Shown here one piece after another: positions 3,001 through 38,073 of a stretch of 64,000 nucleotides of DNA (position 1 is its first letter; every line of letters starts with the position of its first letter). The position numbers and the translations under genes were made by a program. The notes under the pieces were generated by a model. It did not search any database and was not told where the DNA came from. It worked only from the letters and a program-made list of their open reading frames with translations. Where the stretch lies: IMG/VR virus record IMGVR_UViG_3300017917_001342, positions 434,001 through 498,000 of that record; one strand, 5' to 3'.

Positions 3001-6000
3001 CACAATTAGAGTCCAATGTCAGACTTAAAGACGGCGACACCATATGGCAATTTGTTGATGATCAAAACAGTTGGACAGTGTGGCAATATTCAAAAGCCAA
3101 TGTAAACATTGTCAACACATCACCGATTATATTGTCCGGTCAATCTACTGTTATCAACGCAAGCGGTAATGTAGGTGTGTCGCCGGGCGATATTGTAGTA
3201 TTGACAGGTATAAGCAACGTCAATGCGTTGGAAGGTACATGGACTGTTGGTAACATCATAGGCGATGGTAATAGCTTTACAGTTGACACTACTACATTCA
3301 CAGTTGGATCTGGTGGTGAATATTATGCATATAAAAAAGTGCGTTTTGACGACACTGCTGCTAGAGATGCATATCCACCGTTTGGTGGATGGAAGCAAGG
3401 TGATCTAGCCTGGGTCGACAAGACAAATATTGGTCTGCAAGGTTGGGCAGTTTATGAGTATGTAAACAATGCATGGATGCCTAAGCGACTTGAACAACCA
3501 AAAGTTGATGCGGCATTGATGCTTCAAGCTAAACTATACAATAAAAATCAATTAAACGTCTATGGTGATTTAGAATACTATGATCCAGCCAAAGGCTTTA
3601 TACCTAAGCAAGCAAGAAATAATATAAACTTTTCATCTCTATATGATCCAGCATCATACACAGATGGTGATCCAATGCTGTATCCTATAAACTCTTCAAG
3701 AGCATGGGGTCCAGAACATGTTGGCCAAACATGGTGGGATCTAAATGCTGTTCGCTATTATGATTATGAAATAGGTGATACTGCATATCGTTGGCAGCAT
3801 TGGGGAGAAATTGCAACTGACACAACCGTAGATGTGTACGAATGGGTGCAAAGTCCAGTGCTTCCAACTAAATGGGCAGAATTTGTAAAAAATGGATCAA
3901 ATTTTAATCAATATGGTATAGACTATACTCCAAGTGGCACAGTTCTTAATGCAGATAATCCAGCATGGACTACTGCAACAACATACACTGCTGCTGGTAC
4001 TCCTACTACCTACTATTACTTCTGGGTAAAAAATGCATACACAATACCATTCCCACCCGGAAGAGCCGTAACTACCATAGAAATATCAAACCTTATAGCT
4101 GATCCAACTGCATATGGGGTTCCGTGGTATGCTGCTATAGATGATAGAAACATAATAGTTGCAAATGTCGGTAGCATGCTGGTTGCCGATAGTACAGTTC
4201 TTAGTTTGCTCTATACACATAAAGCAAACGAGCAAGTGGACTTTAAAGAGTGGGATCTGGTAAGAGAAAATGATCCCACTAGCATGCCTGCTGACTATTA
4301 TTGGACTAAACTGAAAAACAGTTTAACTGGTAAAGATGGTCTCAGTAATATTGTACCAGATCCATATCTCAGTGATTTGATGAGATATGGTACACTTATA
4401 CGTCCAAGACAAAGTTGGTTTAAAGACCGTACTGCTGCTGCTGCAACATATGTTACCAAAGCAAACCAGTTGCTTCTTGATATATTGCTAGTACCAGATT
4501 CAAACCGCAGCACCTGGGTTGATTATTTCTACGCTGCTGAACCACCACCTGAGGCAGATTACACTGTAGGTACAATCAGCAGTAGAAATGCACTAGGCGG
4601 TACTATCAGTGATGGTAGCACAGTGTTGGTACTTGGCGGCGCAGATACTGCAAATCTTTGGATACTGTATGAATATTCATACAATGGCGGTAACTATCTG
4701 TGGACTGCGATTCGTGTACAAGAATACAACACTCCGAACTACTGGTCGTTTGTTGACTGGTATATGCCAGGATCTGGTGTAACTGCTAACACTATTCCTA
4801 CATATACAGTACCCGACTTGGCAAGCAGAATTACCTATGCTGGAATGCAAAACATCACGGTTAAAGTACTCAACATTGGTGATGGCCGTTGGGCTATATA
4901 TCGCTGGGGTAGTTTTGACGGCATTAATGGGTGGGTAACTGTTGGTTACCAAGATGGTACAATTCAAATCAATGATGGCATCTACAACGGCACTATCAAC
5001 ACTATGATGTGGGATACTACACCGTTTGACAGTGTTACATTTGACATCTATCCATATATAGAATTTGGTTACATCATTGACGGTTTGAGATATTCAGTGT
5101 TCGAAGACATTGATCCTCATAACTCATCTGGCAGCGCACCACTTAACAATCTATTCTTTACTATGATAAACTATGTGTTGGTAGAGCAAGGATTTGTTGA
5201 TTGGATAATCAAAACCAGTTACATTGTCCTTAAAGGTTTCAATATACCTCTAAGTACAAGTACTCTTTATAAGCCAGATAGTACAAGTTCGTTGTTGGCC
5301 TACATCAATGAAGTCAAACCATACCATGCCAAGGTGCGCGATTTTGTTACAGGTCGCACTTGGCAAGACAATGCCTATGTACATTCTACCGATTTTGATA
5401 ATCCTGCAAACGTATCAGTCTCAACAAACATTGCATATAGCAATGTAGACTGGCAAAACAATTATCTTACAAATCCGCAGCTTATACGTACACTAAAAAC
5501 CAAATTGATATTTGACCGAGTAGCTTCATTCCCAGAAGGCTGGGATACTAAACCTTGGGCCTCTGTTGGTTGGCAGCTTGAATCTGGTGCATTGAACCCA
5601 GAATTGATTGATTGGGGTGCCTGGACTCGTATTCAAGAATACTATGCACCTGGTCCGGATATGATAAGAAAAGATGATCCAAACTTGATCACTAATAGTG
5701 ATTACAGAGGCATCATCATTGACAGTATAGGTTTTAGATTCAGACCAGGCTGGGATCTTGCACCATGGGATTCGATAACTGGTTGGCAAGCAGACCAACG
5801 CAGTTTTGACAACTATCTTGATTTAATCATTGAAGGTGGTGTTGCGCCTCAATATGATTACTACTACGGCACAGGTACCAAAGTGTCGTTCAAGCTATCG
5901 AGAATACCACAGGACCCAGCAAGTGTTGTAGTATGGTCGGATCAGGTACTGCGAGACTATGGTGTGGATTGGATAATACCAAACCACGTTACATCTATGT

Positions 6001-8909
6001 TAATAGTACAAGGTGGTTCTCTGTATAGTGTAGGAGACAAGCTACAACTTGATTTCGAACCATACAATTCACCTACCTGTGTTACAGTAACTGAAGTTGA
6101 TGTCAATGGTGCAATCGTTTCAGTATCTATTGACACTAAAGGTCAATATGACATATTCACTGGTACAGAACTGCCATTGATTTACAGACCATATTACTAT
6201 GGTAGTGGTACAGGTGCTATTGTTAAACCTGTATGGGGCAGTAACACACTGGTATTTAGAAATCCACCAAGCAGTAATGCTTCACCTAATGTGTATGTAC
6301 TGTATGTTGGTACTACATTTATTGAAGCACCTACTGGTTCGCTTGATATCATTACAGATGGCAATCAATTTGTACAACCATATATTGCAGAAGATCATGC
6401 TGAGGAACTCTACACTACAAATATTCTAGAAAATATCAGAATGGACACCTACACAGAGCCTGCAGGTGGTGCACCAGTCATTTACATGAGAGTGTACCAG
6501 TTGAATGGTTTACAGGACCAATTTGATATGGGCCTACGTCCTATGAATACCAGCAGTGTTATTGTACAAAAAGACGGTGTGGTGTTAACATACGGTTTAG
6601 CAAATGATTACATTATCAATTGGGAAAGTAACCGTGTGGTGTTCTTACTACCGCCAACTGGTACATCACTACAGATAATGACTATATCCTCCGGTGGTAC
6701 TGGAACCGGAATTTACAATCCAATAGTTGTTAACAACGGTATAGGCTATGCTACTGGTGATATTGTTACATTTGCAGGCGGCAACGTTGTAGATTATAAT
6801 TTTGCATCTGTACAAGTAACTGCTGTAATGGCATCGCAATTAGAAATTGTAAGCAGTGGTAACGGTTATGCAGTTGGCGATGTTCTGATATTAGAAGACG
6901 ATTTTGCAACAGCAAAAACCTATGCTGTAGAATTAACTGTTACAGGTGTTGCAACCAATGGCGCAATAACAACTGTGGAGATTACTCAATCTGGTGAATA
7001 TCAATATACACCGTTATCAAACGTATGGCGCACTTCCGGTAACGGAACCGGTGCAGTAATTGATATACTTTGGGGTATTGAAAGTGTATCAAGCGTTAAC
7101 ACTGGTCTTTATATAAATCATCCGGAAACACCAATTCAACAATTGACTACAACTGGTAACGGTGTAGATGCAACATTCTCTTCGTTGTATACATTTGTAC
7201 GATGCCAAAATGTGTTCAAAGCAAATGGTTCGGTAAATCAATTTGAAATAGATTTCCCTGTTCCAAACAACGACACTAGTATGTTACTGGTAACAGTTGA
7301 CGGTGTGGTAACTAACTTTGTAAATGCAAACGGTCGTGACATAACAGTAATAAACGTACCGCCTGCAAACAGTATTGTTAGCATCACATTGTTTACAAGT
7401 AACAATTTCAGTGTTGTAAATGACCAGACAGTTATTTTACAAACTGGCATTTATGCTTATGCATTGTCTAGTTTGCCATACAGTACAACACCTCCATACT
7501 TGAGCACTACAGTAACACTGAATGGTAATGAATTAACTGCACCATACAGCGACCTGTTTAAAGCAAACGGATATGTAAACGAATACACTGCAACATACAT
7601 GCCATCTAATACTGCATATTTGCAAGTATGGCTCAATGGTTATCTGTTAACAGAGAACACAGAATACACAATTTCTGGTAATAAGGTAATATTCTATGTT
7701 GCACCAACAGCAGGTGCAATTGTTGTGCTTCTAGTAACAGACCCAACATATCCATATGATTATACTATAGAAGGTAACTTTATACGATTGGCAACAACTG
7801 TACCGTTTGTGAACGGCGACGAACTTAAAATAGTAACTTACAGCGAAGATACTAGTTATAAGTTTAGAACACAGACTTTTGCTGGTCCTATGTATCCTAT
7901 AGTACCTGGCAATGCGCCCGGTACATATCTATTAGCAGATAGACCGTGGAACGACAATGCCTTGATGGTCTGGGTTAACAACACGATACAAACCCTAATG
8001 TACGACTATAGATATGAAATAACAGATGGTATATCTGGTTGGGACGTAACACCTTGGGACACATATGGTTGGAATGCTGAATTTGCAGGCGACGGTGTAA
8101 TTATATTTGGTGACAATATTGCACATAGTTCAAGCGACACCGTTTATGTACAATACATGAGTGGTATGCCACAGAAGGTTGCAACCGCATTCAGAACCGT
8201 GAATACTGGCAATACAACCGTCAACAGCATTGCAATTAACAATGCTAGAAGCACCGTACTGCTATCAAATATGTCTGTGCTAGCTGATGCAATAGAAGTA
8301 TCGGACTATACAGTATTGAGCATGCCAACTGAATCTCAACCTGGTGCAGTGTGGATCAACAACGAACGAATTGCATTCTGGACAGTTGACTATGCACCTA
8401 CTATTGAATATCCAAATCGTGCATTCTTAAAAACATTACAGCGCGGTACGTACAACACACCAAGTGGTAATGTAAGCACATTGTATAACACGATATTTTA
8501 CGATGGCGATGGTCAGACCACATACTTTGCAACAGCGGAAGGTACACAGCCATTAGGCGGACCCGAAGTAGTTTATGTAGGAAATGCAATACAAGTGGAC
8601 GTTACTGTCGATTCTGATATAGGTACATACAGTATTGTGATTAATCCCGACGGATATCCAGCTGGCAGATATGTTAAATTTGAAACTGCACCACCATCTG
8701 GTTGGAGAAACGTTAGACTGTGTGCTCCTACATTAGAAGCAAAAATCACTAGTTTTGTTAGCCATCCAGTAAATTCGACTGTATTGGATGGCGGGTATGA
8801 CGTAGAAATACCAGGCGGATACGGATGGCAACCTGCACCAAATGGTTTGCAATACAATAAAACAGCTATGGCAAACTTCCTATTAGAGAACTCTGGTACA
8901 AGGAACTAA
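3..8909 (+). CDS. Giant virion structural protein, probable baseplate wedge/hub (5'-truncated by the window edge)
   Basis: The frame is open from base 3, so the true start lies upstream. >2960 aa, rich in beta-strand/Tyr/Trp, with repeated YxGxGxxxxF and DYxIxxNxxxF modules and GWDxxPWD motifs. Followed by other structural genes. Resembles large baseplate proteins of jumbo myophages (recall). Confidence 0.7.
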   Translation, partial: QREYLRFYNRFISALFNLYSNGYTLNQSPSDWVSVALKQINLGKTPASAFANSGPSTTQGAYCDVKSTDPTYVPPTATRLGCAPAYLPTVYYDRDNLVIQCHDGARIVMAKDGLPLGGIANGLASTISPALLTNPVAAAWLQFEIDLYFNLPSRYRNPQATLALDIREYTPGKWRQGDYTVDEFKQILSPMFDKWVITNQVDYRANTTYDANDPFTWNYHNSADKDGLPVPGYYQGIYRWFYDTDRPHTHPWEMLGFTQEPDWWTVEYGAAPYTAGNAVMWEDLRDGYIRQGPRAGYHPTWARPGLMSCIPVDNQGNLLPPLAAGTVTSLPSSQQAQAEWVFGDGSPVESVWIYSNDYNFSIAEYSYLMKPAQFIEYNWDTIRSKLVFGDQPTGQWVYIDTNNRRPNGEFYVHRENPLAIGGNIHIPNESTLSYFGSCGVQHWISEYLVNRNLSVTQYFGNIIRGTNVQLAHQMGSFVSSNLYLTADSFGQIGYKSQIVPAENVKTYLYKSSSIKTAFYTGVIITQLKNGYRVVGYDGVKQYFEIIPSNAFGPKSYVVVGNERVVWFKQGVDTVQQIPYGYVFGTKQEVFDFLIGLQRFQELEGWVFDTYNNDGNYVYDWQQSAKEFLFWSQGNWANGNFIALSPLANRVKFLQRFGNIQFVNGIVGGTYPLLDKTGSPIQGQNVEVLRYDDEIVVATTNIQSIYGIRLFATTLESIVVIDNQTAFGDIIYDPLYNQAQPRLKLYAYRTNDWNGRVDAPGYFLYQNGTDNQWNLVANFEKTANDFRKYFNIEQPKNYVTFDPVSGNLVQASTSLAVIDNQPISEISKHLIGYQQRGYLQNLLLEDSTEFQFYQGFIRQKGTRGAIDKILRNDSVIPVTSDFVYYEEYALRIARFGDTALNIGIDFIIPQSLYVNDPQQITVYGTQGTDRDLDGIIVLIPNDPRIVVPPQSYSSVTNPLFPTRPQNDEYRDNDYPTTGYVLIGETDYTVTNTAALTSLYSTQLESNVRLKDGDTIWQFVDDQNSWTVWQYSKANVNIVNTSPIILSGQSTVINASGNVGVSPGDIVVLTGISNVNALEGTWTVGNIIGDGNSFTVDTTTFTVGSGGEYYAYKKVRFDDTAARDAYPPFGGWKQGDLAWVDKTNIGLQGWAVYEYVNNAWMPKRLEQPKVDAALMLQAKLYNKNQLNVYGDLEYYDPAKGFIPKQARNNINFSSLYDPASYTDGDPMLYPINSSRAWGPEHVGQTWWDLNAVRYYDYEIGDTAYRWQHWGEIATDTTVDVYEWVQSPVLPTKWAEFVKNGSNFNQYGIDYTPSGTVLNADNPAWTTATTYTAAGTPTTYYYFWVKNAYTIPFPPGRAVTTIEISNLIADPTAYGVPWYAAIDDRNIIVANVGSMLVADSTVLSLLYTHKANEQVDFKEWDLVRENDPTSMPADYYWTKLKNSLTGKDGLSNIVPDPYLSDLMRYGTLIRPRQSWFKDRTAAAATYVTKANQLLLDILLVPDSNRSTWVDYFYAAEPPPEADYTVGTISSRNALGGTISDGSTVLVLGGADTANLWILYEYSYNGGNYLWTAIRVQEYNTPNYWSFVDWYMPGSGVTANTIPTYTVPDLASRITYAGMQNITVKVLNIGDGRWAIYRWGSFDGINGWVTVGYQDGTIQINDGIYNGTINTMMWDTTPFDSVTFDIYPYIEFGYIIDGLRYSVFEDIDPHNSSGSAPLNNLFFTMINYVLVEQGFVDWIIKTSYIVLKGFNIPLSTSTLYKPDSTSSLLAYINEVKPYHAKVRDFVTGRTWQDNAYVHSTDFDNPANVSVSTNIAYSNVDWQNNYLTNPQLIRTLKTKLIFDRVASFPEGWDTKPWASVGWQLESGALNPELIDWGAWTRIQEYYAPGPDMIRKDDPNLITNSDYRGIIIDSIGFRFRPGWDLAPWDSITGWQADQRSFDNYLDLIIEGGVAPQYDYYYGTGTKVSFKLSRIPQDPASVVVWSDQVLRDYGVDWIIPNHVTSMLIVQGGSLYSVGDKLQLDFEPYNSPTCVTVTEVDVNGAIVSVSIDTKGQYDIFTGTELPLIYRPYYYGSGTGAIVKPVWGSNTLVFRNPPSSNASPNVYVLYVGTTFIEAPTGSLDIITDGNQFVQPYIAEDHAEELYTTNILENIRMDTYTEPAGGAPVIYMRVYQLNGLQDQFDMGLRPMNTSSVIVQKDGVVLTYGLANDYIINWESNRVVFLLPPTGTSLQIMTISSGGTGTGIYNPIVVNNGIGYATGDIVTFAGGNVVDYNFASVQVTAVMASQLEIVSSGNGYAVGDVLILEDDFATAKTYAVELTVTGVATNGAITTVEITQSGEYQYTPLSNVWRTSGNGTGAVIDILWGIESVSSVNTGLYINHPETPIQQLTTTGNGVDATFSSLYTFVRCQNVFKANGSVNQFEIDFPVPNNDTSMLLVTVDGVVTNFVNANGRDITVINVPPANSIVSITLFTSNNFSVVNDQTVILQTGIYAYALSSLPYSTTPPYLSTTVTLNGNELTAPYSDLFKANGYVNEYTATYMPSNTAYLQVWLNGYLLTENTEYTISGNKVIFYVAPTAGAIVVLLVTDPTYPYDYTIEGNFIRLATTVPFVNGDELKIVTYSEDTSYKFRTQTFAGPMYPIVPGNAPGTYLLADRPWNDNALMVWVNNTIQTLMYDYRYEITDGISGWDVTPWDTYGWNAEFAGDGVIIFGDNIAHSSSDTVYVQYMSGMPQKVATAFRTVNTGNTTVNSIAINNARSTVLLSNMSVLADAIEVSDYTVLSMPTESQPGAVWINNERIAFWTVDYAPTIEYPNRAFLKTLQRGTYNTPSGNVSTLYNTIFYDGDGQTTYFATAEGTQPLGGPEVVYVGNAIQVDVTVDSDIGTYSIVINPDGYPAGRYVKFETAPPSGWRNVRLCAPTLEAKITSFVSHPVNSTVLDGGYDVEIPGGYGWQPAPNGLQYNKTAMANFLLENSGTRN

Positions 8910-18112: not shown

Positions 18113-19179
18113 CAATGCAATTACACGATAAAAATATTTTAGTTCAGTTACATAATGATCCTGCAATATTAAGTTTCATTCTTAAATTAACTGACAGCGA
18201 TAAAGTTGCATTCAAACAGTTATTGGTTTGGCCTCGATCATTGATTAGTATGATGTCTAAAAGTGACACTAATGTTATTGAATTTTTAAACAAATGTACT
18301 CAAGATGAAATGGTATATGTAAAAGACATAGTGTCGTGGCCTCAAACACTGTTTGCACTATTGACAAAAAACAATAACAAAGTACTGAAGTTTCTAAATA
18401 GGATTTCTGATACTGAACGTTTTAGCATTGAACAAATATTAGAATGGTCGCCAGTACTGTTGAAAACGCTGCGTGACACACCAGAACACGTTACCGTAAT
18501 ACATCGTATGTGGGATATCGTACCCGACATGCCACGGTTCCTTAAAACCTATTTTGCAGTATACACGCATCCAAACTTCAACAATAAAGAAATGATGGAT
18601 GCCTTTAGTAATGGACAGCTTAATAGCAAACTATGGTTAATTGATACTGTTGAGTCATTGAACATATCGTTGAACAGAGTATGGACGCTGTGTGGGTGGA
18701 TAGGCACATTGGCCTATTTGATGTTTATTCGTAGACAGAGTCTTGACATAACTCATATTCGCAGTTTTGATATAGATGATAACTGTCACGAATTAGCAGA
18801 TACAATGAACAGAGAGCAGGTAGTAGAAGGTTGGGATTTTAAAGCATCTACATTAGACGTGAATCTATTGCAATATGACGACTTTACATTTAACACTATG
18901 AGACGCAATGGTACTGTTCAGCCTGTGTTTGATTCGGCTGACACTATAATCAACACCAGTTGTGACCATATGGGCAACTCGGACGTTTGGTGGAACAATA
19001 TTCCAAGTGGTAAATTGGTTATATTACAAAACAACGATTTCTTTGAACATGACGAACACAGCAATTGTTGTTTTTCGTTAGAGCAATTTAAGTTAAAATA
19101 TCCTATGCAACAAATTCTATATGAAGGTGCTCTTGATTGCACAATATACAATAGATTTATGTTGATAGGCTATAAATGA
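18109..19179 (+). CDS. Class I SAM-dependent methyltransferase-like protein with three N-terminal 36-aa repeats
   Basis: C-terminal DAFSNGQLNSKLW...LCGWIG...RSFDID...IINTSCDH Rossmann-like pattern. Trp at residues 41/77/113 marks the repeat. Confidence 0.55.
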   Translation: MTMQLHDKNILVQLHNDPAILSFILKLTDSDKVAFKQLLVWPRSLISMMSKSDTNVIEFLNKCTQDEMVYVKDIVSWPQTLFALLTKNNNKVLKFLNRISDTERFSIEQILEWSPVLLKTLRDTPEHVTVIHRMWDIVPDMPRFLKTYFAVYTHPNFNNKEMMDAFSNGQLNSKLWLIDTVESLNISLNRVWTLCGWIGTLAYLMFIRRQSLDITHIRSFDIDDNCHELADTMNREQVVEGWDFKASTLDVNLLQYDDFTFNTMRRNGTVQPVFDSADTIINTSCDHMGNSDVWWNNIPSGKLVILQNNDFFEHDEHSNCCFSLEQFKLKYPMQQILYEGALDCTIYNRFMLIGYK

Positions 19180-20519
19180 CAGTGGATTTGTCAACTTTAA
19201 CAATTAGGCAATTACAAGAAGAATCTGCAAGAGTACTTGCCGCAGGAGATGGCTTTGGCAACAATGAATTGGTAAAATTCAATAAAGTTGCTAACCATAA
19301 CAGTCATGATTGGTATCGTGCTGTTATCGCATGGTACATAGAGCAGTATGGCAATTTGCCAAGTGTTGCAGGACCAGGTAAACAGGTTAAGTTGCTATTA
19401 CAAAACACACCGACTGTGCAGCAACCTGTTTCACAGATATATCCCTATGATAAAATCAGTGTAGTACATCTTGAAATCACATCTAAGTGCAATGCCAGTT
19501 GTCCGATGTGCGCAAGAAATAAATTCGGCGGACCTGTAAATGATCTGTTGCCACTAACTGAACTCAGTCTCATTGATATACAGCGTATCATGCCAATTGA
19601 GTTTGTACAGCAATTAACCAGACTTTATATGTGTGGTAACTATGGTGACCCTATTGTTGCCGCTGACATGTTAGAAGTGTGCGAATGGCTAAGGTCTATA
19701 AACCCTGGAATAAAATTAGGCATACACACAAATGGTAGTGCAAAAACCGAGGGGTGGTGGAAACAACTTGGCAAATTGCTTTGTAAAAAAGGTGATTATG
19801 TAAAATTTGGTATAGATGGCTTACAAGACACAAACCATATCTATCGCAGAGGCACCTATTGGCAAAAGCTTATGAATAACGCACAGGCATTTATCAACGC
19901 TGGTGGTATTGCGCAATGGGAATTTATTGTTTTTAAACACAACGAACATCAAATCGAAGAAGCTGAACAACTGAGTAAATCTATGGGTTTTCAACAGTTC
20001 AGAGTTAAGAAGACTGGCAGGTTTTTCAGTAATACGCGATTAGAAGGTAAAGACCGTCAAGAAGTATGGAATAGAAACGGCGACGTAGAATACTATATCG
20101 AAAAACCAACTAATCCTGTGTATACTAATGACAGTTTAGAAAAAGAACAACAGCTTGTAGACACCTTCGGCAGTATGCAAAATTATGTAGATCAAACCTG
20201 TGTTAAGTGTAAAGTTGCTGAAGATCATAGCATTTACATATCTGCTGAAGGATTGGTGTTCCCATGCTGCTGGACTGCCAATCAAATGTACATATGGTAT
20301 ACGCCGTTTAAGAAGAATGAAATATGGTCGTTGTTAGACGGTGATACTACACAGATAAGTGCATTAGAAAATGACCTGAAATCTATAATAGAGGGTAAGT
20401 TTTTCAATGACATAGCTAGTAGCTGGTCGAAGTCTAACACTAGTGACGGTAAACTAAAAGTCTGTGCTAAAACCTGTGGTACAGGCTTTGACCAATTTGC
20501 AAGCCAATTTAAAAAGTGA
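19176..20519 (+). CDS. Radical SAM protein with C-terminal SPASM/twitch-like domain
   Basis: CNASCPMC (CxxxCxxC), CGNYGDP, HTNG, C-terminal C...GLVFPCCW...CAKTC. Confidence 0.85.
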   Translation: MTVDLSTLTIRQLQEESARVLAAGDGFGNNELVKFNKVANHNSHDWYRAVIAWYIEQYGNLPSVAGPGKQVKLLLQNTPTVQQPVSQIYPYDKISVVHLEITSKCNASCPMCARNKFGGPVNDLLPLTELSLIDIQRIMPIEFVQQLTRLYMCGNYGDPIVAADMLEVCEWLRSINPGIKLGIHTNGSAKTEGWWKQLGKLLCKKGDYVKFGIDGLQDTNHIYRRGTYWQKLMNNAQAFINAGGIAQWEFIVFKHNEHQIEEAEQLSKSMGFQQFRVKKTGRFFSNTRLEGKDRQEVWNRNGDVEYYIEKPTNPVYTNDSLEKEQQLVDTFGSMQNYVDQTCVKCKVAEDHSIYISAEGLVFPCCWTANQMYIWYTPFKKNEIWSLLDGDTTQISALENDLKSIIEGKFFNDIASSWSKSNTSDGKLKVCAKTCGTGFDQFASQFKK

Positions 20520-21922
20520 ACACTATGACAAACGATTTACCAAGTCCAACTTTTTGTGTATTACCTTGGATACACCTAAGCAGTAGACCAGACGGTGCTA
20601 TGCGTGTTTGCTGCACAGCCAATGCCAGCAGTGTTCAAGATCCTGACAGTACTAAAAAAAGCGGCGGCGGTCAGATAGGTGTACTACGCACTGCTGATGG
20701 TACACCAGCCAATCTCAACAACACTACACTAATGGAAGCGTGGAACAACGATTACATGCGCAATGTTAGAAAGATGATGTTGCGAGGCGAAAAACCACCT
20801 AGCTGTTTAAAGTGCTATAAAGAAGAAGCCGCAGGAGTACAAAGCAAACGCAATTGGGAAACTGCTTATTGGATAGGTCAGCTTGGTTTGGATGATATTA
20901 TAGGAGACACTGCCGAAGATGGATCTGTAAGTCCTAGAATACGTTATATAGATCTCAGACTTGGTAGCAAGTGTCAGCTGGCATGTGTAATGTGTAGTCC
21001 CCATGATTCCAGTGGGTGGGTCAAGGAATGGACACAGATGCATCCTCAGATTCAAAATCAACGTCTCAAAGAAAGTTGGAGTTGGGAAAACAAAGGCAAA
21101 GCCCATGGTGCCAGTTACAATTGGCATTTGAATAATCCTGTGTTTTGGGAACAGCTTTATGACCAAATACCGCATATGAAGCAGCTTTATTTTGCAGGCG
21201 GCGAAAGTACTATCATCGACAAGCACTATACACTGCTAGAAGAAGTAATTCGCAGAGGCTATGCCGATAAAATAGAATTGCGTTACAACAGCAACGCAGT
21301 TGAACTACCAAACAAATTGTTTATGCTTTGGGATCAGTTTAGAGAAGTAAAGTTTCATTTCAGTATTGATTCGATCGGTGCAAAAAACGATTATATCAGA
21401 TATCCCAGTAACTGGGACCAACTGGTTACCAATATGGAATTATTAGACAGCACTGCTGACAACATAACGGTGACCACTGCGGTAACAGTTATGGCATTGA
21501 ACATCTATTACATACCAGACATGATAAAGTGGAAAATGCAAAAGAATTTTAAAAAATTCAACGCATGGCCCAATGGTGCAGGAATGATAAATTGGCATTT
21601 AGCGTATTGGCCGCCACAATTAAATGTTAAGGTTTTGCCTAAGTGGGCAAAACAAATGGTTAGAGAAAAATTTGAAGAATTTTTTACATGGCTTGATGAA
21701 AATTGGAAACAAACAACAGGATTAGATGAAACAGTCAGTAAGGACACATTCATGTCTGCTGGGTATGGTATAAAGCGTTTACGAAGTCTACTAGACTTTA
21801 TGGATAGTGAAGATTGGAGTGAACGCATGCCTGAATTGCAAGAGTGGATATGTCTTATAGACAAACAGCGAAATCTTGATTTTAAACAGATATTTCCGGA
21901 GATGGCCGGATTATTAGATTGA
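20516..21922 (+). CDS. Radical SAM protein with N-terminal Cys-rich SPASM/twitch-like domain
   Basis: N-terminal FCVLPW...VCC...CLKCY; CQLACVMC; FAGGE; YNSN. Confidence 0.85.
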   Translation: MNTMTNDLPSPTFCVLPWIHLSSRPDGAMRVCCTANASSVQDPDSTKKSGGGQIGVLRTADGTPANLNNTTLMEAWNNDYMRNVRKMMLRGEKPPSCLKCYKEEAAGVQSKRNWETAYWIGQLGLDDIIGDTAEDGSVSPRIRYIDLRLGSKCQLACVMCSPHDSSGWVKEWTQMHPQIQNQRLKESWSWENKGKAHGASYNWHLNNPVFWEQLYDQIPHMKQLYFAGGESTIIDKHYTLLEEVIRRGYADKIELRYNSNAVELPNKLFMLWDQFREVKFHFSIDSIGAKNDYIRYPSNWDQLVTNMELLDSTADNITVTTAVTVMALNIYYIPDMIKWKMQKNFKKFNAWPNGAGMINWHLAYWPPQLNVKVLPKWAKQMVREKFEEFFTWLDENWKQTTGLDETVSKDTFMSAGYGIKRLRSLLDFMDSEDWSERMPELQEWICLIDKQRNLDFKQIFPEMAGLLD

Positions 21923-21990: not shown

Positions 21991-22413
21991 ATGGCAACTT
22001 CTCAAAAAAAGACCACTGCTGCTGACGAATACTGGAACGAGATATTCGATAGTTTAGTAATTGAAAACGAACCTCCAATTGAATACATTAAAAGGGTAAT
22101 AATCGTAACAAAAGATGGCAATCAGTACAAAGTAAGTGCTCAACATTTTGCTCAAATAATTGAACACGAAAAACACTTGCATCCAGATGAAAGTGAAATA
22201 CGCAGTTGTAAAATGAGCATAGACTATAACAAACTGCGATATGATGTAGAAAATTGGGCAGGCCAGCTTTTGAGTGATTTAGAAGGTGTGCCGTTTGAAA
22301 AAGAACAGCCAGTTAAACCTACGAGAAAACCTAGAGCAGTTAAATCAAAACCTGAGACTGCCGAAGAACAACCGACAAAAACACGTCGTAATAAACCTAA
22401 GCCGTCAGAGTAA
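21991..22413 (+). CDS. Hypothetical protein with basic K/P/R-rich C-terminal tail
   Basis: Start moved from the track's 21919 to the ATG at 21991, which has an RBS and late promoter. Confidence 0.65.
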   Translation: MATSQKKTTAADEYWNEIFDSLVIENEPPIEYIKRVIIVTKDGNQYKVSAQHFAQIIEHEKHLHPDESEIRSCKMSIDYNKLRYDVENWAGQLLSDLEGVPFEKEQPVKPTRKPRAVKSKPETAEEQPTKTRRNKPKPSE

Positions 22414-23640
22414 CGGCTTAGGTAACCATTTTGCCAGCAATGGCATTGATTCGTGTACGTCACGTTTGAATAGTTTGTCTTCTAAATAGACACTGTTAGC
22501 AAAATCCTGCCATGTTGGTATACCCATTGAAGGTAAGCCATAAGGTAATTCGTTTATGTCACCCAACATGTAATTAATTGGATGACTACCCACTGCTTTA
22601 GCCCGTGCATATTTCACAGGGTCGTTTATACTAGCAAGATAATCATTCCACTTTGACAAAATCTCCTGTTTAACTTCGTCCGGTGCAACTCTTGGGCTTA
22701 TTATCAATGGTGACTGTACTATTGCACTGCTTAGATCTATTGACAAATTGTTATCATAGAGATAGTCTATAGTTTCAGATAGATAAAACAATTGATACAC
22801 ACTACAGGTTATCTCAGAGTATACATCATACCCTGCTGCACGAAATGCTCTCATGTTTTTTTCAACAACTGACCAATTGGCACCTTGTCTGAAATAATTG
22901 TAACGTTCTAACACCCCATCGGTGCTAACAACTACTACAACCTTTTTGAATTTTTTCCAAAGATCAAACACGTTGTATTTTTTATACTCTGTAACTGTGC
23001 CATTGGTTACATATAACAGTTGTATGTGTGCAGCATGCTCTTCTGGTATTGCTGCGATAAATTCATAATGCTGTTGCTGATACAGTGTTTCACCTCCTGC
23101 AAATGATATGTGCATGAGATTAGGAACTAGATTTTTTAAAATGTCGTCTATGTATTCCTGTCGTAGATTTTTTCCGTCAACTGGTTCTGCATCCTGCCAT
23201 AATAACGGTTGCCATAGCGTCGGATTGCGCTTTAGCAATGCTGCCCATTTGCTGCTGTATGCAGGGCTGCAATGCCTGCATGACAAATTGCATTCGTTGC
23301 CAAATCTAATTTCGATAGTTTTTAAATGCGATATTTCGCCAGTAGTATGGTCATAGTCATTGAGATTTAATCCAAATTCAGGATGCTGCAACCCTTCAAG
23401 TCTTGTACTAATAAGACCACTGGCTTCAAAATCTCTGCACGACCCGCAGCCTTCTGGCCACTCACCGTTCATCAATGTCTGTCTATGAGTTCTTGCTTCT
23501 TGCGAATTAACAATTTCACTCATTAATTGTTGTTTATGATCACCTAGTTTGGCGACACATCTAAAACACGACGATACGCGGTCTTGTTGTAGTTGATGGT
23601 TTAGATGTCCTAATGCATATGCACAGATTTTTGGAGTCAT
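22405..23640 (-). CDS. Radical SAM protein with N-terminal Cys-rich domain
   Basis: N-terminal C...SSCFRC...CGSC; CNLSCRHC; FAGGE; VTNGT; STDG. Confidence 0.85.
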   Translation of the reverse strand: MTPKICAYALGHLNHQLQQDRVSSCFRCVAKLGDHKQQLMSEIVNSQEARTHRQTLMNGEWPEGCGSCRDFEASGLISTRLEGLQHPEFGLNLNDYDHTTGEISHLKTIEIRFGNECNLSCRHCSPAYSSKWAALLKRNPTLWQPLLWQDAEPVDGKNLRQEYIDDILKNLVPNLMHISFAGGETLYQQQHYEFIAAIPEEHAAHIQLLYVTNGTVTEYKKYNVFDLWKKFKKVVVVVSTDGVLERYNYFRQGANWSVVEKNMRAFRAAGYDVYSEITCSVYQLFYLSETIDYLYDNNLSIDLSSAIVQSPLIISPRVAPDEVKQEILSKWNDYLASINDPVKYARAKAVGSHPINYMLGDINELPYGLPSMGIPTWQDFANSVYLEDKLFKRDVHESMPLLAKWLPKPLL

Positions 23641-23684
23641 GCTGATATTTGATATCCGAATTGATTGATATATTATGTATGTCG

Positions 23685-23702
23685 TTATAAACTAGTTTAT
23701 AA
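23685..23702. promoter_or_regulatory. 18-bp perfect palindrome TTATAAACTAGTTTATAA between divergent genes
   Basis: Equals its own reverse complement; lies between the radical SAM gene (-) and the queF-like gene (+). Confidence 0.6.
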
Positions 23703-23720
23703 AAATCAGCAGGCAAATTA

Positions 23721-24116
23721 ATGAAATTATGGCAATCCATCGAAAATACTTTAAAGTCTCTACCAAACGCAGCAGAAGGCTATGAGCAGCAAATAGACAT
23801 ACCTGAATTTACATTTCTTGGTGTAAAGAATCAGCCAGATTTTGGACATATTAAAATATGGTTTCATGGCAAAGAAAAAACCATTGAACTCAAAAGCCTA
23901 AAAGAATATCTGCTGCAATATCGAGACACTGTTATCAGCTACGAACGTGCAACAGATGTAATGTATAAACATCTAATGGAAGCCTATGCTCCGTTTAGAT
24001 TGCGTATGGAAATTGCGTTTAGGCCGCGCGGTGGCATCAGCAGTAAAATGGTAGTAGACAGCGATTGGGGTCATCTAGGTGGCACTGATAAACTTTGGCA
24101 ACATCACAAGGACTAA
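23721..24116 (+). CDS. queF: QueF-family T-fold protein lacking the catalytic Cys
   Basis: PEFT, QPDF, ELKSLKEY, SYE and PRGGIS align with B. subtilis-type QueF, but EFTSLCP reads EFTFLGV. Confidence 0.75.
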   Translation: MKLWQSIENTLKSLPNAAEGYEQQIDIPEFTFLGVKNQPDFGHIKIWFHGKEKTIELKSLKEYLLQYRDTVISYERATDVMYKHLMEAYAPFRLRMEIAFRPRGGISSKMVVDSDWGHLGGTDKLWQHHKD

Positions 24117-24119
24117 GCT

Positions 24120-24605
24120 ATGATACGTGCAATACTAGCCTGCGACGACAACTGGGGCATTGGTAAAAATGGCACACTGCCTTGGCCACATAACAGTGCA
24201 GATCTCAAATGGTTTAAAGAATCAACAACAGGTGGCGTTGTTGTTATGGGTAAAACTACCTGGGACAGTTTACCAGAAAAAAGTAAACCATTGCCGAACA
24301 GAAATAACATTGTGGTTACATCATCTATTAAAGATAAAGATGGCCCGTATCATTTTGTTAAGTTTGAAAATGCCAAAGACCATATTGTGTCTATGAGTAA
24401 ACTACAACCAGTTTGGATCATCGGTGGTGCAAAATTAGTTGAAAGCATGATAGATATTATGGATGAACTTTGGTTAAATCGAATCGCTGGTAACTTTGAC
24501 TGTGATACCTTTTTGCCAAGCGAGTTAATAATGAGACAGTTTGTGCAAGCAGATGTTGCACAACATAATACTGAATTAAACATAACACGATGGGTTAGGA
24601 GATAA
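24120..24605 (+). CDS. folA: Dihydrofolate reductase
   Basis: GIGKNGTLPW...DLKWFK, VVMGKTTWDSL, PLPNRNNIVV, WIIGGA, CDTF. Confidence 0.95.
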   Translation: MIRAILACDDNWGIGKNGTLPWPHNSADLKWFKESTTGGVVVMGKTTWDSLPEKSKPLPNRNNIVVTSSIKDKDGPYHFVKFENAKDHIVSMSKLQPVWIIGGAKLVESMIDIMDELWLNRIAGNFDCDTFLPSELIMRQFVQADVAQHNTELNITRWVRR

Positions 24606-24606
24606 C

Positions 24607-25452
24607 ATGCAAAATTACTTAGACTTATTGCAAAAAATATTAGACCGTGGTATAGACAGTGCCGATCGTACAGGTGTAGGTACTAGAAGCCTGTTTGCTG
24701 AACAGCTACGCTTTGATCTTAAACAGGGATTTCCTGCTGTAACTACTAAAAAGTTAGCATGGAAATCAATGGTAGCAGAACTGCTATGGTTCCTCGAAGG
24801 CACAGGCGACGAACGCAGACTTGCTGAAATACAACACGGTACACGTAAGCCAGAAAAGACCACAATATGGACTGCAAATGCCAATGCAGACTACTGGAAA
24901 CCCAAAGCACGCTATGAAGGTGACCTTGGTCGTGTCTACGGTGTACAGTGGCGCAACTGGCGCAAAGTTGATGGTTGGAAAACTGTCGATCAACTTAAGA
25001 ACTTGATCGAAGGCTTGCAGAACGACCCAACTGGCCGCAGACATATTATAAGTGCATGGAACCCAGGTGAAATTGATCAAATGGCATTGCCTCCGTGTCA
25101 TATGATGGCACAGTTCTACATTAGGAACAATCAGCTAAGTTGCCAAATGTATCAGCGTAGCTGTGATGCATTTTTGGGATTGCCCTTTAACATTGCCAGC
25201 TACGCACTGCTTACTCATTTGATTGCAAAAACCATAGGTGCAGAAGTTAATGAACTCATCATCACGCTTGGCGATGTGCATATCTATAACAATCACTTTG
25301 ATGCAGTGACTACACAGTTATCAAGGACACCATATGCATTGCCAAAACTGCATATTGCAGACTCTGCAACAGTATGGAACTCTAAACTTGATGACTTTAC
25401 ACTAGTTGATTATCAGCATCATCCTGCTATACAAGCAGAGATGGCGGTATAA
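24607..25452 (+). CDS. thyA: Thymidylate synthase
   Basis: DRTGVGT, ELLWFL, GRVYGVQWR, MALPPCH, QRSCDAFLGLPFNIASY, HIYNNH. Confidence 0.97.
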   Translation: MQNYLDLLQKILDRGIDSADRTGVGTRSLFAEQLRFDLKQGFPAVTTKKLAWKSMVAELLWFLEGTGDERRLAEIQHGTRKPEKTTIWTANANADYWKPKARYEGDLGRVYGVQWRNWRKVDGWKTVDQLKNLIEGLQNDPTGRRHIISAWNPGEIDQMALPPCHMMAQFYIRNNQLSCQMYQRSCDAFLGLPFNIASYALLTHLIAKTIGAEVNELIITLGDVHIYNNHFDAVTTQLSRTPYALPKLHIADSATVWNSKLDDFTLVDYQHHPAIQAEMAV

Positions 25453-25453
25453 G

Positions 25454-25481
25454 AAAAAGGACGGTAAAACCGTCCTTTTTT
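25454..25481. terminator. Bidirectional rho-independent terminator
   Basis: AAAAA-GGACGGT-AAA-ACCGTCC-TTTTTT between convergent genes. Confidence 0.9.
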
Positions 25482-25499
25482 CCTAACTATTTCAAAGAT

Positions 25500-26225
25500 T
25501 TATTTTTTAGCTAATACAGATGTTTTGCGTTGTACAGCAGGTGCTTTTGCAGGCGTAGCAGCTTTAGTAGCAGCCTTTGCAGCAGCTTTGGTCACTGTGG
25601 GTACTGCAACAGTTTCCTCGGCTTTAACAGACTTATTTGCAGGGTTTAACGTGGGGTCTATTCTGTATGCTTCTGCACGTTTACTAACAGCATCTGCTTC
25701 TAGCATTTCTGCCATACGTATTAGATTCCTTGCTGATTCAGCCTGACCTTCTGCGGTAGTGCCTTCCATGTTGGTCTTATGCACATTGAACTTGCCCATT
25801 TCTGCAATGACCTGTGCTCTAGTCACGGGATCTAGATCATTAAGGTCTGCGGGTGTTTCCGTTTCAACTTGTTTCATAGTTTCAAGTATCTGACGAAGTG
25901 GGAACTTCATACCACGACGCGGGGTCATGTGTACTAGATCAACCGGCACTTTCATTAGTCGCTGACTTACATGAAGCTTTTGTAGCATAGTTTGTCCACT
26001 GCCATCTGGACTAGGTCTACGACCAAGAATGTCGCCTAGATCCTTTGCTTGTTGACCTTCTACACTTTCAACAATACGACGCAGTGCTTCGTTGTATTGA
26101 TCTGGTAATGCGTCGGTATCAATTACCAATGCATTTTCTTCGTCTTGTGGCAAACTCATGAACACAACTACAACGTTCTTGCCTGTATTTTCGAGCATGC
26201 CTATATGTTTAAGCATATCAGCCAT
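25500..26225 (-). CDS. Hypothetical protein (241 aa) with A/K/T-rich tail
   Basis: Clean ORF overlapping its upstream neighbour. Confidence 0.75.
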   Translation of the reverse strand: MADMLKHIGMLENTGKNVVVVFMSLPQDEENALVIDTDALPDQYNEALRRIVESVEGQQAKDLGDILGRRPSPDGSGQTMLQKLHVSQRLMKVPVDLVHMTPRRGMKFPLRQILETMKQVETETPADLNDLDPVTRAQVIAEMGKFNVHKTNMEGTTAEGQAESARNLIRMAEMLEADAVSKRAEAYRIDPTLNPANKSVKAEETVAVPTVTKAAAKAATKAATPAKAPAVQRKTSVLAKK

Positions 26226-33442: not shown

Positions 33443-34033
33443 TTAATTGTCGGTTTTATACCAAAACCAGCATTCGTTAGGTGCTTGCTTTAAAAGGGAA
33501 AGATCCCAACCTTTGCTTTTGTACCAACTTGAAACTGCAAAATTCACACTGAACAAATTGCTGTCATGCCCTGCAATAATGCCGCCAGTTCGTACCTTTG
33601 GATACCAACTGTCAAGGTCGGACAACACCTGCTTCATGCTGTGTCCACCATCTATAAACACAAAGTCGTATACATCGTCATCTAACATACTAGCAGCAGT
33701 TTGACTATCTTCTTTTATCAACTTAAAGCGATCGCCCATCAACGGTATGTTTTTCAACAACACACGGTAGTTCAACTCTTGTTCAAGTTTGGTAATTGGT
33801 CTATCCCAATCAATGTATGGTTGGTAATGGTCAACACCTATCAGAGAACTGATATTCGGACATTCCTGCAACATATACCAACTGTTTATACCTCGATTGA
33901 CACCTATTTCTATGCCAATTGCTGGATAAGGTAATTTCTTAAGTTCTTTCACAATGCCACGAGCAGCCTGCTGTTTGTATATCGCAGGCCAATCGGCACT
34001 TTCTAATAATGAGTTAATAGATTTGTCGTTCAC
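33443..34033 (-). CDS. Class I SAM methyltransferase (Methyltransf_24-like)
   Basis: IEIGVNRG, DFVFIDGGH, GGIIAGHD. Confidence 0.8.
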   Translation of the reverse strand: MNDKSINSLLESADWPAIYKQQAARGIVKELKKLPYPAIGIEIGVNRGINSWYMLQECPNISSLIGVDHYQPYIDWDRPITKLEQELNYRVLLKNIPLMGDRFKLIKEDSQTAASMLDDDVYDFVFIDGGHSMKQVLSDLDSWYPKVRTGGIIAGHDSNLFSVNFAVSSWYKSKGWDLSLLKQAPNECWFWYKTDN

Positions 34034-34037
34034 ATAG

Positions 34038-34045
34038 TATTTATA
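34038..34045 (-). promoter_or_regulatory. T4 late promoter consensus TATAAATA, 4 nt before the GTG start
   Basis: Exact match overlapping the upstream stop codon. Confidence 0.6.
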
Positions 34046-34577
34046 TTGGTTTTTGCCATAACCAACTGGTAACTATGCCATAACCTTGATTTGGTACAGA
34101 CGGATCAACTTCCCTATGATCGGGTATCAATTCACAACAGGCCTGTTTGACGCCTTCATGTTGCGGATGATTGTAGTCATGTCCGCCCATCCATCCTCCG
34201 GGTTTTACTTTTGGCAACCACGCAGTGATGTCTTGTACAACAGCTTCGTACGAATGATCACCATCTATCCATACAAAGTCTAAACTGTGATCTTCGTATT
34301 CAGTTGCAGCTTCTGTGCTAGGAATCTGTTTGTGAGTATAGCGTCCACAGACTTGAATCAAATTGTTGTTAAATTCAGTTTGATAGCCTACGTCAACACA
34401 GTCTAACTTGATGTTCTTGCCGCTATTAATAATCTCTACAAGCATGTATGCTGCACTTCTGCCCATGTAAGAACCGACCTCTACAAAATGTGCAGAGTCT
34501 GATACCTGTGCAATCATATCGTCGTAGATACCGGGATAGTCAAACCATCCTTCGATTTTGTTATAAAAGTGTTCCAT
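34041..34577 (-). CDS. Class I SAM methyltransferase (Methyltransf_24-like)
   Basis: VEVGSYMGRS, DFVWIDGDHSY, PGGWMGGHDY. Confidence 0.85.
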   Translation of the reverse strand: MEHFYNKIEGWFDYPGIYDDMIAQVSDSAHFVEVGSYMGRSAAYMLVEIINSGKNIKLDCVDVGYQTEFNNNLIQVCGRYTHKQIPSTEAATEYEDHSLDFVWIDGDHSYEAVVQDITAWLPKVKPGGWMGGHDYNHPQHEGVKQACCELIPDHREVDPSVPNQGYGIVTSWLWQKPI

Positions 34578-35206: not shown

Positions 35207-36079
35207 TTATGCCAGACTAGCATACAAGTGTATTTGCAAGTTTAGAGTAAATCCATACTTGACACAATATTCTGCTGCATATTCATGGTTGCGTTGATTA
35301 GATTCTGCGTTAAGCAGGCCCGGGGTCCAGAATGAAACTACTTCGTCAATAGTGCTGCGCTCTTGCATAGTTGTCTGGTTAGAAGTTAGTCGCAGTTTCT
35401 TTGATGCAAGTGGTACTTCGTTATAGACATTCATTGGACTTACATAGATTTCTTTGCCTGTCTTGTTGCGCCACTCATGCGCCCAATCCGGTACCTCTGC
35501 ATATGGAGAACCTTCTGTAGCTTCCATAACAAATTTCAAACAGTCTGCACGTTCGAGTATTTCTGGACGCGGTTTCAAATACCGCACTGCAATCTTATTC
35601 TTTTCTAAACATTTTGGTGAACATACTAACACAGTGGACGCTGGTATAGCTGTATTCTGTGTACCGTTTGATTCAATCTGAGTTTTAGTAAAAATTCTGT
35701 CCATGTATTCTAAAAACGGACCAATGTTGTCTTGCAGCATTGGTTCCCCACCTGTCATAACAAGCACCATTTTTTTACGAGCAACGTCGCTATGATGTGT
35801 CCATGCAGGCCTATCTAGTTTTTTATCTGTGTAGAATTGCTCGATTGTCTGTTCTACACGTTCTGCGATCTGATCAAATGTTAGCCAATCACCGTCGTCG
35901 AAGAATGTATCACAGAATTGACAATCTAAGTTACATTTTGCAAGACGAATAAAGAACGCAGGTTCTCCACGAAAGGGTCCTTCACCTTGCAGTGTCATAA
36001 ACATACTAGTTACAAACAGTTGATCTTTGCTTGCGTCTTTAAAGTATTTTTTACCAATGATTTCGTTTGTACCAAACAT
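35207..36079 (-). CDS. queE: 7-carboxy-7-deazaguanine synthase (radical SAM)
   Basis: FMTLQGEG, FIRLAKCNLDCQFCDT, TGGEPMLQ, IESNGT, CSPK, LQIH. Confidence 0.9.
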   Translation of the reverse strand: MFGTNEIIGKKYFKDASKDQLFVTSMFMTLQGEGPFRGEPAFFIRLAKCNLDCQFCDTFFDDGDWLTFDQIAERVEQTIEQFYTDKKLDRPAWTHHSDVARKKMVLVMTGGEPMLQDNIGPFLEYMDRIFTKTQIESNGTQNTAIPASTVLVCSPKCLEKNKIAVRYLKPRPEILERADCLKFVMEATEGSPYAEVPDWAHEWRNKTGKEIYVSPMNVYNEVPLASKKLRLTSNQTTMQERSTIDEVVSFWTPGLLNAESNQRNHEYAAEYCVKYGFTLNLQIHLYASLA

Positions 36080-37085: not shown

Positions 37086-37381
37086 CCGTTCCTCAGATGA
37101 TGCTGCATTATGATACTGGAAACTTCTTGTCCCAGATCTTTATCTTCGCTGATAATGTAAAGTTCTGATTCATATCTATCACGTTTTGAATCATACCAAC
37201 TAACCTGTGCAACAGTACCACCGTTTGCAGTGTGAAATTTAAAATTTGCACTGCTTCTGGTACTGAGGTCATCATCAACAGCAGATGCCTTAACAATGCC
37301 AGATGATCTGCTGTTAGTAAGACGCTGATTGTCCCAGTCTTCGCGTATCCATTTAATCACTAGTTTTTTTAGAAAATTCAT
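37082..37381 (-). CDS. Hypothetical protein (99 aa)
   Basis: ATGA overlap with the folE stop. Confidence 0.7.
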   Translation of the reverse strand: MNFLKKLVIKWIREDWDNQRLTNSRSSGIVKASAVDDDLSTRSSANFKFHTANGGTVAQVSWYDSKRDRYESELYIISEDKDLGQEVSSIIMQHHLRNG

Positions 37382-38073
37382 CTAGGTGCAAACTCCTGTT
37401 GCAATTTGATATTATCAAAGAATTCTTTCTTAGTACCGGTGTCGTGATTAAATGCACCTTTCAACACTGTGGTTTGTGTTAGGCTGCTGTGTGCCATAAT
37501 ACCACGATTTTCGCAACAGCCATGTGTTGCCTGAATATACACACCTACGTCTTTACTGCCGGTGGCTTTCATAATCTCCCTGGCTATATCGTTACAGAGT
37601 TCTTCTTGTAGTGTACCACGTCGAGCACACCACTGTGCAATACGAGTATATTTGCTAAGTCCAATTAGTTTTTGTGCAGCAATAATACCGATATATGCAA
37701 CACCAGTTACTGGTTGATGATGATGGCTGCAAACGCTTTTGATTTCACTGCGTACTACCAACATACCTTCGTAACGGTCTTCGCTGTCGTTGGGAAATGC
37801 AGTTGGATTGGGAGACTTATCATAACGTCCTGACATCAGTTCGTTATAATACATCTTAGCAAGCCTGCGTGCTGTGCCTTTGCTGTTTGGATCTGTTTCT
37901 TTGTCGATTAACAGAGTATCTAACACTGCTTCAAATGCCAGTTCGGCTTCGTCAATCAGTTTCTTTTTTATGTCTTCTGTAATGAATTGAGAAATGTTAT
38001 CACCTGCCCAGTATCTTGTACCAGATGATTTGAGTTGTTCGCGAATTTTCGCGCTAACGGGATAGTTTGTCAA
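37378..38073 (-). CDS. folE: GTP cyclohydrolase I
   Basis: SVCSHHHQP, IGLSKYTR, LQEEL, HGCCENRG, TTVLKGAF. Confidence 0.95.
   Translation of the reverse strand: MTNYPVSAKIREQLKSSGTRYWAGDNISQFITEDIKKKLIDEAELAFEAVLDTLLIDKETDPNSKGTARRLAKMYYNELMSGRYDKSPNPTAFPNDSEDRYEGMLVVRSEIKSVCSHHHQPVTGVAYIGIIAAQKLIGLSKYTRIAQWCARRGTLQEELCNDIAREIMKATGSKDVGVYIQATHGCCENRGIMAHSSLTQTTVLKGAFNHDTGTKKEFFDNIKLQQEFAPR

Follow-up and report, generated by a model that had tools for sequence, protein, structure and literature searches.

A conserved cysteine-less QueF relative in a large phage, a candidate folate reductase

The question raised by this locus is what a QueF-family protein can do after the catalytic cysteine of that family has been lost. 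The window, defined here as the whole 64,000-nucleotide stretch that was analyzed, is part of a 518,643-bp virus record with direct terminal repeats. The original prediction was that this gene encodes a QueF homologue with glycine in place of the thioimide-forming cysteine, that it binds a 7-deazapurine and NADPH but performs different chemistry or acts as a sensor, and that it may be a new step in base hypermodification. The observation of the missing cysteine is confirmed. The interpretation is only partly supported, because the gene and its relatives track methionine and folate genes and little connects them to 7-deazapurines.

The QueF-like gene and its missing cysteine

The gene (referred to here as QueF*) and the features that bear on it are as follows.

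23721..24116 (+), QueF* gene, an intact ORF encoding a 131-aa QueF paralogue without the cysteine (T-fold); coordinates include the stop codon
23820..23822 (+), Gly34 codon (GGT) at the position of the catalytic Cys55 of B. subtilis QueF
23838..23840 (+), Asp40 codon, equivalent to the general acid Asp62
23886..23909 (+), E56-L-K-S-L-K-E-Y63, the retained QueF NADPH/base-binding motif
23937..23948 (+), S73-Y74-E75-R76, the clade signature SYER
24024..24044 (+), P102-R-G-G-I-S-S108, in which S108 replaces the pocket residue Ile130
24120..24605 (+), dihydrofolate reductase (DHFR) gene, starting 3 nt after the QueF* stop codon (PF00186, 8.5e-35)
24607..25452 (+), thymidylate synthase ThyA gene, starting 1 nt after the DHFR stop codon (PF00303, 2.3e-103)
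23649..23676 (+), sigma-70-like hexamers (10 of 12 matches) in the 80-nt AT-rich gap upstream of QueF*, a consensus match only, as the number of sites found is no higher than in shuffled sequence
37378..38073 (-), GTP cyclohydrolase I (FolE) gene, 13 kb away (PF01227, 3e-39)
35207..36079 (-), QueE-like radical SAM gene (phrog_2076, 1e-47; 74 bits against the NCBIfam QueE equivalog TIGR04322, below its 200-bit cut-off)

The protein matches the Pfam QueF family (PF14489) at 66.2 bits against a cut-off of 27.3, and this is its only Pfam hit. It scores 76.9 bits against the NCBIfam preQ1 synthase equivalog TIGR03139 and 32.4 bits against TIGR03138, below the respective cut-offs of 86.9 and 293. 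A phmmer search of the PDB aligned it to B. subtilis QueF (4F8B, 4FGC, and 5UDG), with PEFTSLCPKtGQPDF opposite PEFTFLGVK-NQPDF. Cys55, the thioimide-forming cysteine that corresponds to Cys190 in E. coli QueF, is therefore Gly34, and the loop is one residue shorter. Apart from a TetR regulator at E=0.67, this search returned only QueF chains.

The residues Asp62 (D40), Glu97 (E75), Glu78 (E56), the E-x-K-S-x-K-x-Y motif (E56-Y63), and PRGGIS (102-107) are kept. The motif defined for QueF is E(S/L)K(S/A)hK(L/Y)(Y/F/W), and position 7 is Glu in this protein instead of L/Y. Further changes, absent from the original prediction, are Pro56 to V35, Phe95 to S73, His96 to Y74, Asp98 to R76, Cys99 to A77, and Ile130 to S108. 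The roles of these residues are taken from a 2026 review (PMC13740343), in which Glu97 anchors the 2-amino-4-oxo face of the substrate and Phe95 is a stacking residue. The pocket appears larger and more polar but is inferred to still fit a 2-amino-4-oxo-pyrimidine head. An AlphaFold2 model has a pLDDT of 90.9. Its best PDB matches are B. subtilis QueF (TM 0.78-0.80, about 31% identity), followed by bimodular QueF, QueF-L, and GTP cyclohydrolase I.

Conservation of the substitution and the balance of synonymous and non-synonymous change had been named in advance as checks, and both exclude chance, a sequencing error, or decay. The best 120 metagenomic homologues are 74-89% identical to the protein, and all 120 have Gly at the Cys position. 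Of 150 representatives of 50%-identity clusters, 75 have Gly and 62 have Cys. The Gly proteins share the signatures E-x-T-F-x-G-x3-QPDF, [IV]SYER, and PRGGISS, which Cys-QueF lacks. An alignment-derived profile (A3) scored 160-192 bits for Gly members and 82-117 bits for Cys-containing QueF. On a tree of 147 proteins, from which 14 representatives without a clear motif were left out, the Gly/Cys state changes once, on a branch with SH-aLRT of 92. Against its closest relatives the gene shows pN of 0.08-0.15 and pS of 0.71-0.89, the latter saturated, which indicates purifying selection. A megablast search of positions 22000-26000 against GenBank phages found nothing, and tblastn of the protein against phages found only distant Cys-containing QueFs below 40% identity.

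Gene context in phages and bacteria

As originally stated, the window holds no queC. In addition to FolE and the QueE-like gene, the phage genome encodes a QueD-like gene 160 kb away. No QueC above cut-off and no TGT hit was found in it, and searches with DpdA2 and QueC of Vibrio phage VH7D found nothing. Across 14 phage records no TGT/DpdA Pfam hit and no QueC above cut-off was found. Five records estimated to be 79-100% complete carry QueF* without FolE or PTPS, and QueF* must therefore be able to act on a host metabolite.

Among 79 viral loci, the gene immediately downstream is S-adenosylhomocysteine hydrolase (AhcY) in 36, or in 12 of 29 clusters at 90% identity. SAM synthetase (MetK) is the upstream gene in 11 loci, and related phages place the gene in MetK-QueF*-AhcY blocks. 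QueD directly follows QueF* in seven loci. The DHFR-ThyA neighborhood of this window was not seen in the other viral loci. The genome also has MetK and at least 16 radical SAM/SPASM paralogues, while MetF, MetH, and AhcY were absent.

The clade is not phage-specific. A scan of species-representative genomes found about 32 carriers from several bacterial phyla, including Chitinophagales, Cytophagales, Marinilabiliaceae, Syntrophorhabdus, Dehalococcoidia, Pleionea, Nitrotoga, Neomarinimicrobiota, and a Saccharibacteria genome. Some carriers have QueF* as their only PF14489 gene, and others have it alongside a normal bimodular QueF. A phylum-wide sample of 401 Bacteroidota genomes added no new carriers.

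In Cyclobacteriaceae and other Cytophagales the gene lies between the two halves of a split methionine synthase, in the order metH-N (PF02574), QueF*, metH-C (Pterin_bind, B12, and activation domain). In 1.6-Mb Cytophagales genomes the order is AhcY, MetK, QueF*, an ORF of about 190 aa, metH-N, metH-C. In Pleionea it is divergent from full-length MetH, and in Chitinophagaceae it lies beside a Cys/Met PLP enzyme and homoserine dehydrogenase. It follows thyX in Syntrophorhabdus and lies beside thyA-folA in the Saccharibacteria genome. On a virus-like contig the order is QueF*, HNH, MetH. The Marinilabiliaceae are an exception, where the neighbors are sulfur-relay genes and an RNA methyltransferase. 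As a control, 48 Cys-QueF loci from the same scan were examined, of which 13 have queC next door and seven have queE. None of the 32 bacterial Gly-clade loci has queC, queE, or folE nearby.

Rfam scans of 30 bacterial loci identified a SAM-I or SAM-I/IV riboswitch upstream, on the same strand, of the operon containing QueF* in 11 loci, in one of which it sits directly in front of QueF*. A SAM-II riboswitch precedes the adjacent metK in one more locus. No preQ1 riboswitch was found in these loci, and none of nine Cys-QueF loci has a SAM riboswitch. The window itself has no Rfam match.

MetF is missing in 12 of the 32 carriers. In a sample of 151 Cytophagales genomes, 121 have MetF, and all seven with QueF* lack it (hypergeometric p about 7e-6, not corrected for phylogeny), Mfr-type reductases being outside the scope of this count. 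The seven genomes represent roughly three lineages and include complete chromosomes. They hold MetH with its pterin-binding domain, so they need 5-methyl-THF. However, QueF* and canonical MetF coexist in 20 of 32 carriers, and in two loci they share one operon, so QueF* is not simply a replacement for MetF. Five other Cytophagales genomes have MetH but neither MetF nor QueF*, and the neighbors of metH in these five gave no alternative candidate. Absence of MetF alone is therefore weak evidence. The gene that takes the place of metF in the operon of MetF-negative Cyclobacteriaceae is a CitMHS transporter and not a reductase. In one genome (G043) a 661-aa frame fuses PF02574, the homocysteine-binding domain, with the MTHFR domain, and QueF* occupies the equivalent position after metH-N. 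FolD is present in 32 of 32 carriers, which rejects replacement of FolD. Carriers in Saccharibacteria and Syntrophorhabdaceae lack the MetH N-domain, and there the gene sits by thymidylate synthase, which fits a methylene-THF-related role but not supply of MetH.

Inferred reaction

The best explanation, held with middling confidence, is that QueF* is a distinct, widespread clade of QueF paralogues that has lost the thioimide-forming cysteine and moved from queuosine synthesis into folate-dependent methionine/SAM (one-carbon) metabolism. The most likely reaction is a flavin-free, NADPH-dependent reduction of 5,10-methylene-tetrahydrofolate to 5-methyl-tetrahydrofolate, the MetF step that feeds methionine synthase MetH. 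The clade, its conservation, its fold, and its genomic and regulatory associations come from the analysis itself, while the substrate, the reaction, NADPH binding, and the roles of individual residues are inferred, with substrate and reaction resting on context alone.

In the proposed mechanism, the T-fold pocket would hold the pterin head through Glu75 and Glu56, the residues that hold the 2-amino-4-oxo face and ring NH of preQ0 in QueF. Asp40 would protonate N10 and open the imidazolidine ring to the 5-iminium cation. NADPH, held by the retained motif, would then deliver a hydride to the exocyclic carbon. This resembles the imine-reducing second half of the QueF reaction, which needs no cysteine, and loss of the cysteine would reflect a substrate that is already an iminium. 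The changes of Cys to Gly, Phe95 to Ser, and Ile130 to Ser would enlarge the pocket for a 6-6 ring with a tail, and the new Arg76 may bind a carboxylate. Direct hydride transfer from NAD(P)H to the iminium without flavin is established for mycobacterial Mfr (PMC11094777).

In this phage the gene forms a compact QueF*-DHFR-ThyA block and would act as an auxiliary metabolic gene on host folates. A phage-borne supply of reduced one-carbon folate for host MetH and for its own ThyA fits the gene content, although this is inference. The MetK-QueF*-AhcY blocks of related phages would sustain SAM regeneration.

In its broadest form, which is more tentative, this reading makes QueF* a third structural class of methylene-tetrahydrofolate reductase, a 130-aa T-fold enzyme that evolved from the queuosine nitrile reductase and replaces or supplements MetF in several bacterial lineages. 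Large phages would carry it widely to couple host folate to SAM regeneration and thymidylate synthesis. Such an analogue would fill the MetF gap in genomes such as MetF-negative Cyclobacteriaceae. It would be a clear case of an enzyme changing pathway by dropping covalent catalysis while keeping its hydride-transfer machinery, and a gene that looks like DNA-hypermodification equipment would become a one-carbon or SAM-supply auxiliary gene. If it really reduces C=N bonds with NADPH and no cysteine, it could also interest those engineering QueF-type biocatalysts. Literature searches, limited to open-access papers and preprints, found no description of Cys-less QueF and no link between QueF and MTHFR. 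Every automatic name seen for this clade was 7-cyano-7-deazaguanine reductase, which would be a systematic mis-annotation.

Alternative readings and related enzymes

A different folate or pterin oxidoreductase in the same metabolic area is possible but unlikely. Candidates are NADP-linked oxidation of 5-methyl-THF back to methylene-THF, which would release the methyl trap to feed thymidylate synthase, reduction of methenyl-THF, reduction of a dihydropterin or dihydrofolate, and repair of oxidised 5-methyl-dihydrofolate. The ThyA-DHFR and ThyX neighborhoods, the bacterial genomes among them lacking the MetH N-domain, and the coexistence with MetF agree with this reading, and the retained Asp and NADPH motif suit any C=N reduction. 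However, FolD is present in all 32 carriers and DHFR lies next door in two contexts, which makes those two activities redundant. Oxidation of 5-methyl-THF by NADP+ is thermodynamically unfavorable, and the MetF-negative pattern in Cytophagales points to the MetF step.

The originally proposed 7-deazaguanine role, in which an intermediate such as CDG or host preQ0 would be bound and another substituent reduced or removed by decarboxylation as part of phage nucleic-acid or nucleoside modification, is less likely still. Parts of that proposal are supported. The protein cannot be a canonical nitrile reductase, because C55A and C55S QueF are inactive (PMC13740343), the Cys loss is conserved in a clade, and different chemistry with NADPH is reasonable given the retained motif and general acid. 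The protein descends from QueF and keeps both base-anchoring glutamates. This genome and its large relatives encode FolE, QueD-like, and QueE-like genes but no recognizable QueC, so CDG would accumulate, and Arg76 near the substituent pocket could bind the CDG carboxylate. QueD follows QueF* in the seven viral loci, and MazG-QueE-x-MetK-QueF* blocks exist. Against this are the lack of TGT/DpdA Pfam hits in the 14 phage records, the phages that carry QueF* without FolE or PTPS, the bacterial neighbors, and the SAM rather than preQ1 riboswitches. NADPH cannot reduce a free carboxylate without prior activation.

A non-catalytic binder, such as a folate or purine sensor, a sponge, or a regulatory subunit of MetH or AhcY, is not excluded but is doubtful. 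The nucleophile is lost, the protein is small with an oligomeric T-fold, and the tight spacing with AhcY or MetH could reflect a protein partner. This would not explain why the general-acid Asp, both lysines and the Tyr of the cofactor motif, and Arg68 are invariant or nearly so across a clade only 35-50% identical overall, and the gene occurs alone in many phages with no fixed partner. A decaying or mis-sequenced queF is refuted by the shared Gly, the intact frame, the low pN, the spread of the clade, and the confident model.

Among known enzymes, unimodular QueF (YkvM type, EC 1.7.1.13) shares the Pfam domain, T-fold, motif, and anchors described above, but differs from QueF* in the cysteine, the loop, and the pocket. 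In bacteria QueF* has no queC, queD, queE, or tgt neighbors. QueF-L, the archaeosine synthase amidinotransferase of Crenarchaeota (5JYX), is likewise a T-fold QueF paralogue that changed function (TM 0.63-0.69 by the query, up to 0.87 by the target, about 12% sequence identity). It keeps the cysteine, forms the thioimide, and lacks NADPH-dependent reduction (PMC10516641), while QueF* is the reverse in lacking the cysteine and keeping the NADPH motif.

MetF (FAD-dependent, PF02219) and Mfr would share the proposed reaction and place in the pathway, with MetH operons, the S-box regulon, and a link to the SAM cycle. Both are (beta-alpha)8 barrels with no homology to QueF*, and in Mfr the iminium forms after protonation by an acidic residue (PMC11094777). 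QueF* would be an analogue with a different fold. GTP cyclohydrolase I, dihydroneopterin aldolase, and PTPS/QueD share the T-fold and a conserved Glu that anchors the 2-amino-4-oxo-pyrimidine of purines and pterins alike. None of them uses NADPH or reduces a folate, and none matches the sequence significantly.

Two fusion proteins were uninformative. One is a Lar-like domain joined to QueF*, and the other is a chimera with FliM that is probably an artefact. The family is abundant in metagenomes, where about 1,475 clusters at 90% identity matched the query, with Gly and Cys types not separated beyond the best 120.

Radical SAM, QueD-like and PP-loop ATPase genes of the phage genome

The phage genome (G000) contains at least 16 paralogous radical SAM/SPASM genes, three of which are located just upstream of the gene for QueF*, the cysteine-less QueF paralogue. 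These three genes are found in the window at the following positions:
19176-20519, radical SAM/SPASM gene
20516-21922, radical SAM/SPASM gene
22405-23640, radical SAM/SPASM gene

Other copies are present in G000 at about 87-102 kb, 144-152 kb, and 381-387 kb. The genome also encodes its own SAM synthetase (G000:175049-176164). Together, these genes represent an unusually heavy investment in SAM chemistry.

The QueD/PTPS-like protein of the phage (locus L004:1447-1962, corresponding to G000:294628-295143) contains C-N-L-I-H-G-Y where QueD has the CxxxHGH zinc and catalytic motif. The second zinc histidine is therefore replaced by Tyr. This protein matches neither canonical QueD nor the published DpdL motif, LxxxHRHxF (PMC10516641).

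Two divergent PP-loop ATPases (SGGxDS) are located in G000 at about 375.6-378.7 kb (loci L002:1495-2217 and L003:1492-2127). Both end in a QueC-like motif, HCG-x-C-xx-C-xx-R-xxx-FG, but both score below the QueC Pfam cut-off. Each lies next to a radical SAM gene and, in L003, next to cupin-like genes. These ATPases could represent a cryptic QueC function or an unrelated pathway.

Other open reading frames of the window

Two adjacent short ORFs (window 33443-34033 and 34041-34577) both match the same part of a phage DNA methyltransferase family (phrog_2675), and are either tandem partial duplicates or a split gene. The window also contains two very long ORFs, at 15-8909 and 42819-47597, which are 2964 and 1592 amino acids in length, respectively.

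QueF* and metH loci in other viral and bacterial sequences

A single viral contig (L091) carries two tandem QueF* copies, one at L091:5470-5838 and the other in the adjacent ORF. One QueF* homologue (P0128) is fused to a Lar restriction-alleviation domain. Several contigs that carry QueF* (the IMG/VR records L037, L076, and L078) are filed as giant-virus MAGs (GVMAG), although their relatives are tailed-phage-like records.

In several small Bacteroidota genomes, a DUF6580 protein of about 190-200 amino acids is located between QueF* and metH-N (the gene for the N-terminal half of a split methionine synthase), inside the SAM-riboswitch operon. This ORF is present at L113:8350-8958 and in loci L185, L186, and L187.

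A virus-like contig (L194:5126-7672) encodes an 848-amino-acid MetH that lacks the reactivation domain, and its gene is separated from QueF* by an HNH endonuclease gene. A Cytophagales MetH (L201:7860-12104) is 1415 amino acids in length and contains a DUF559/REase-like endonuclease domain inserted between the B12-binding cap and the B12-binding domain.
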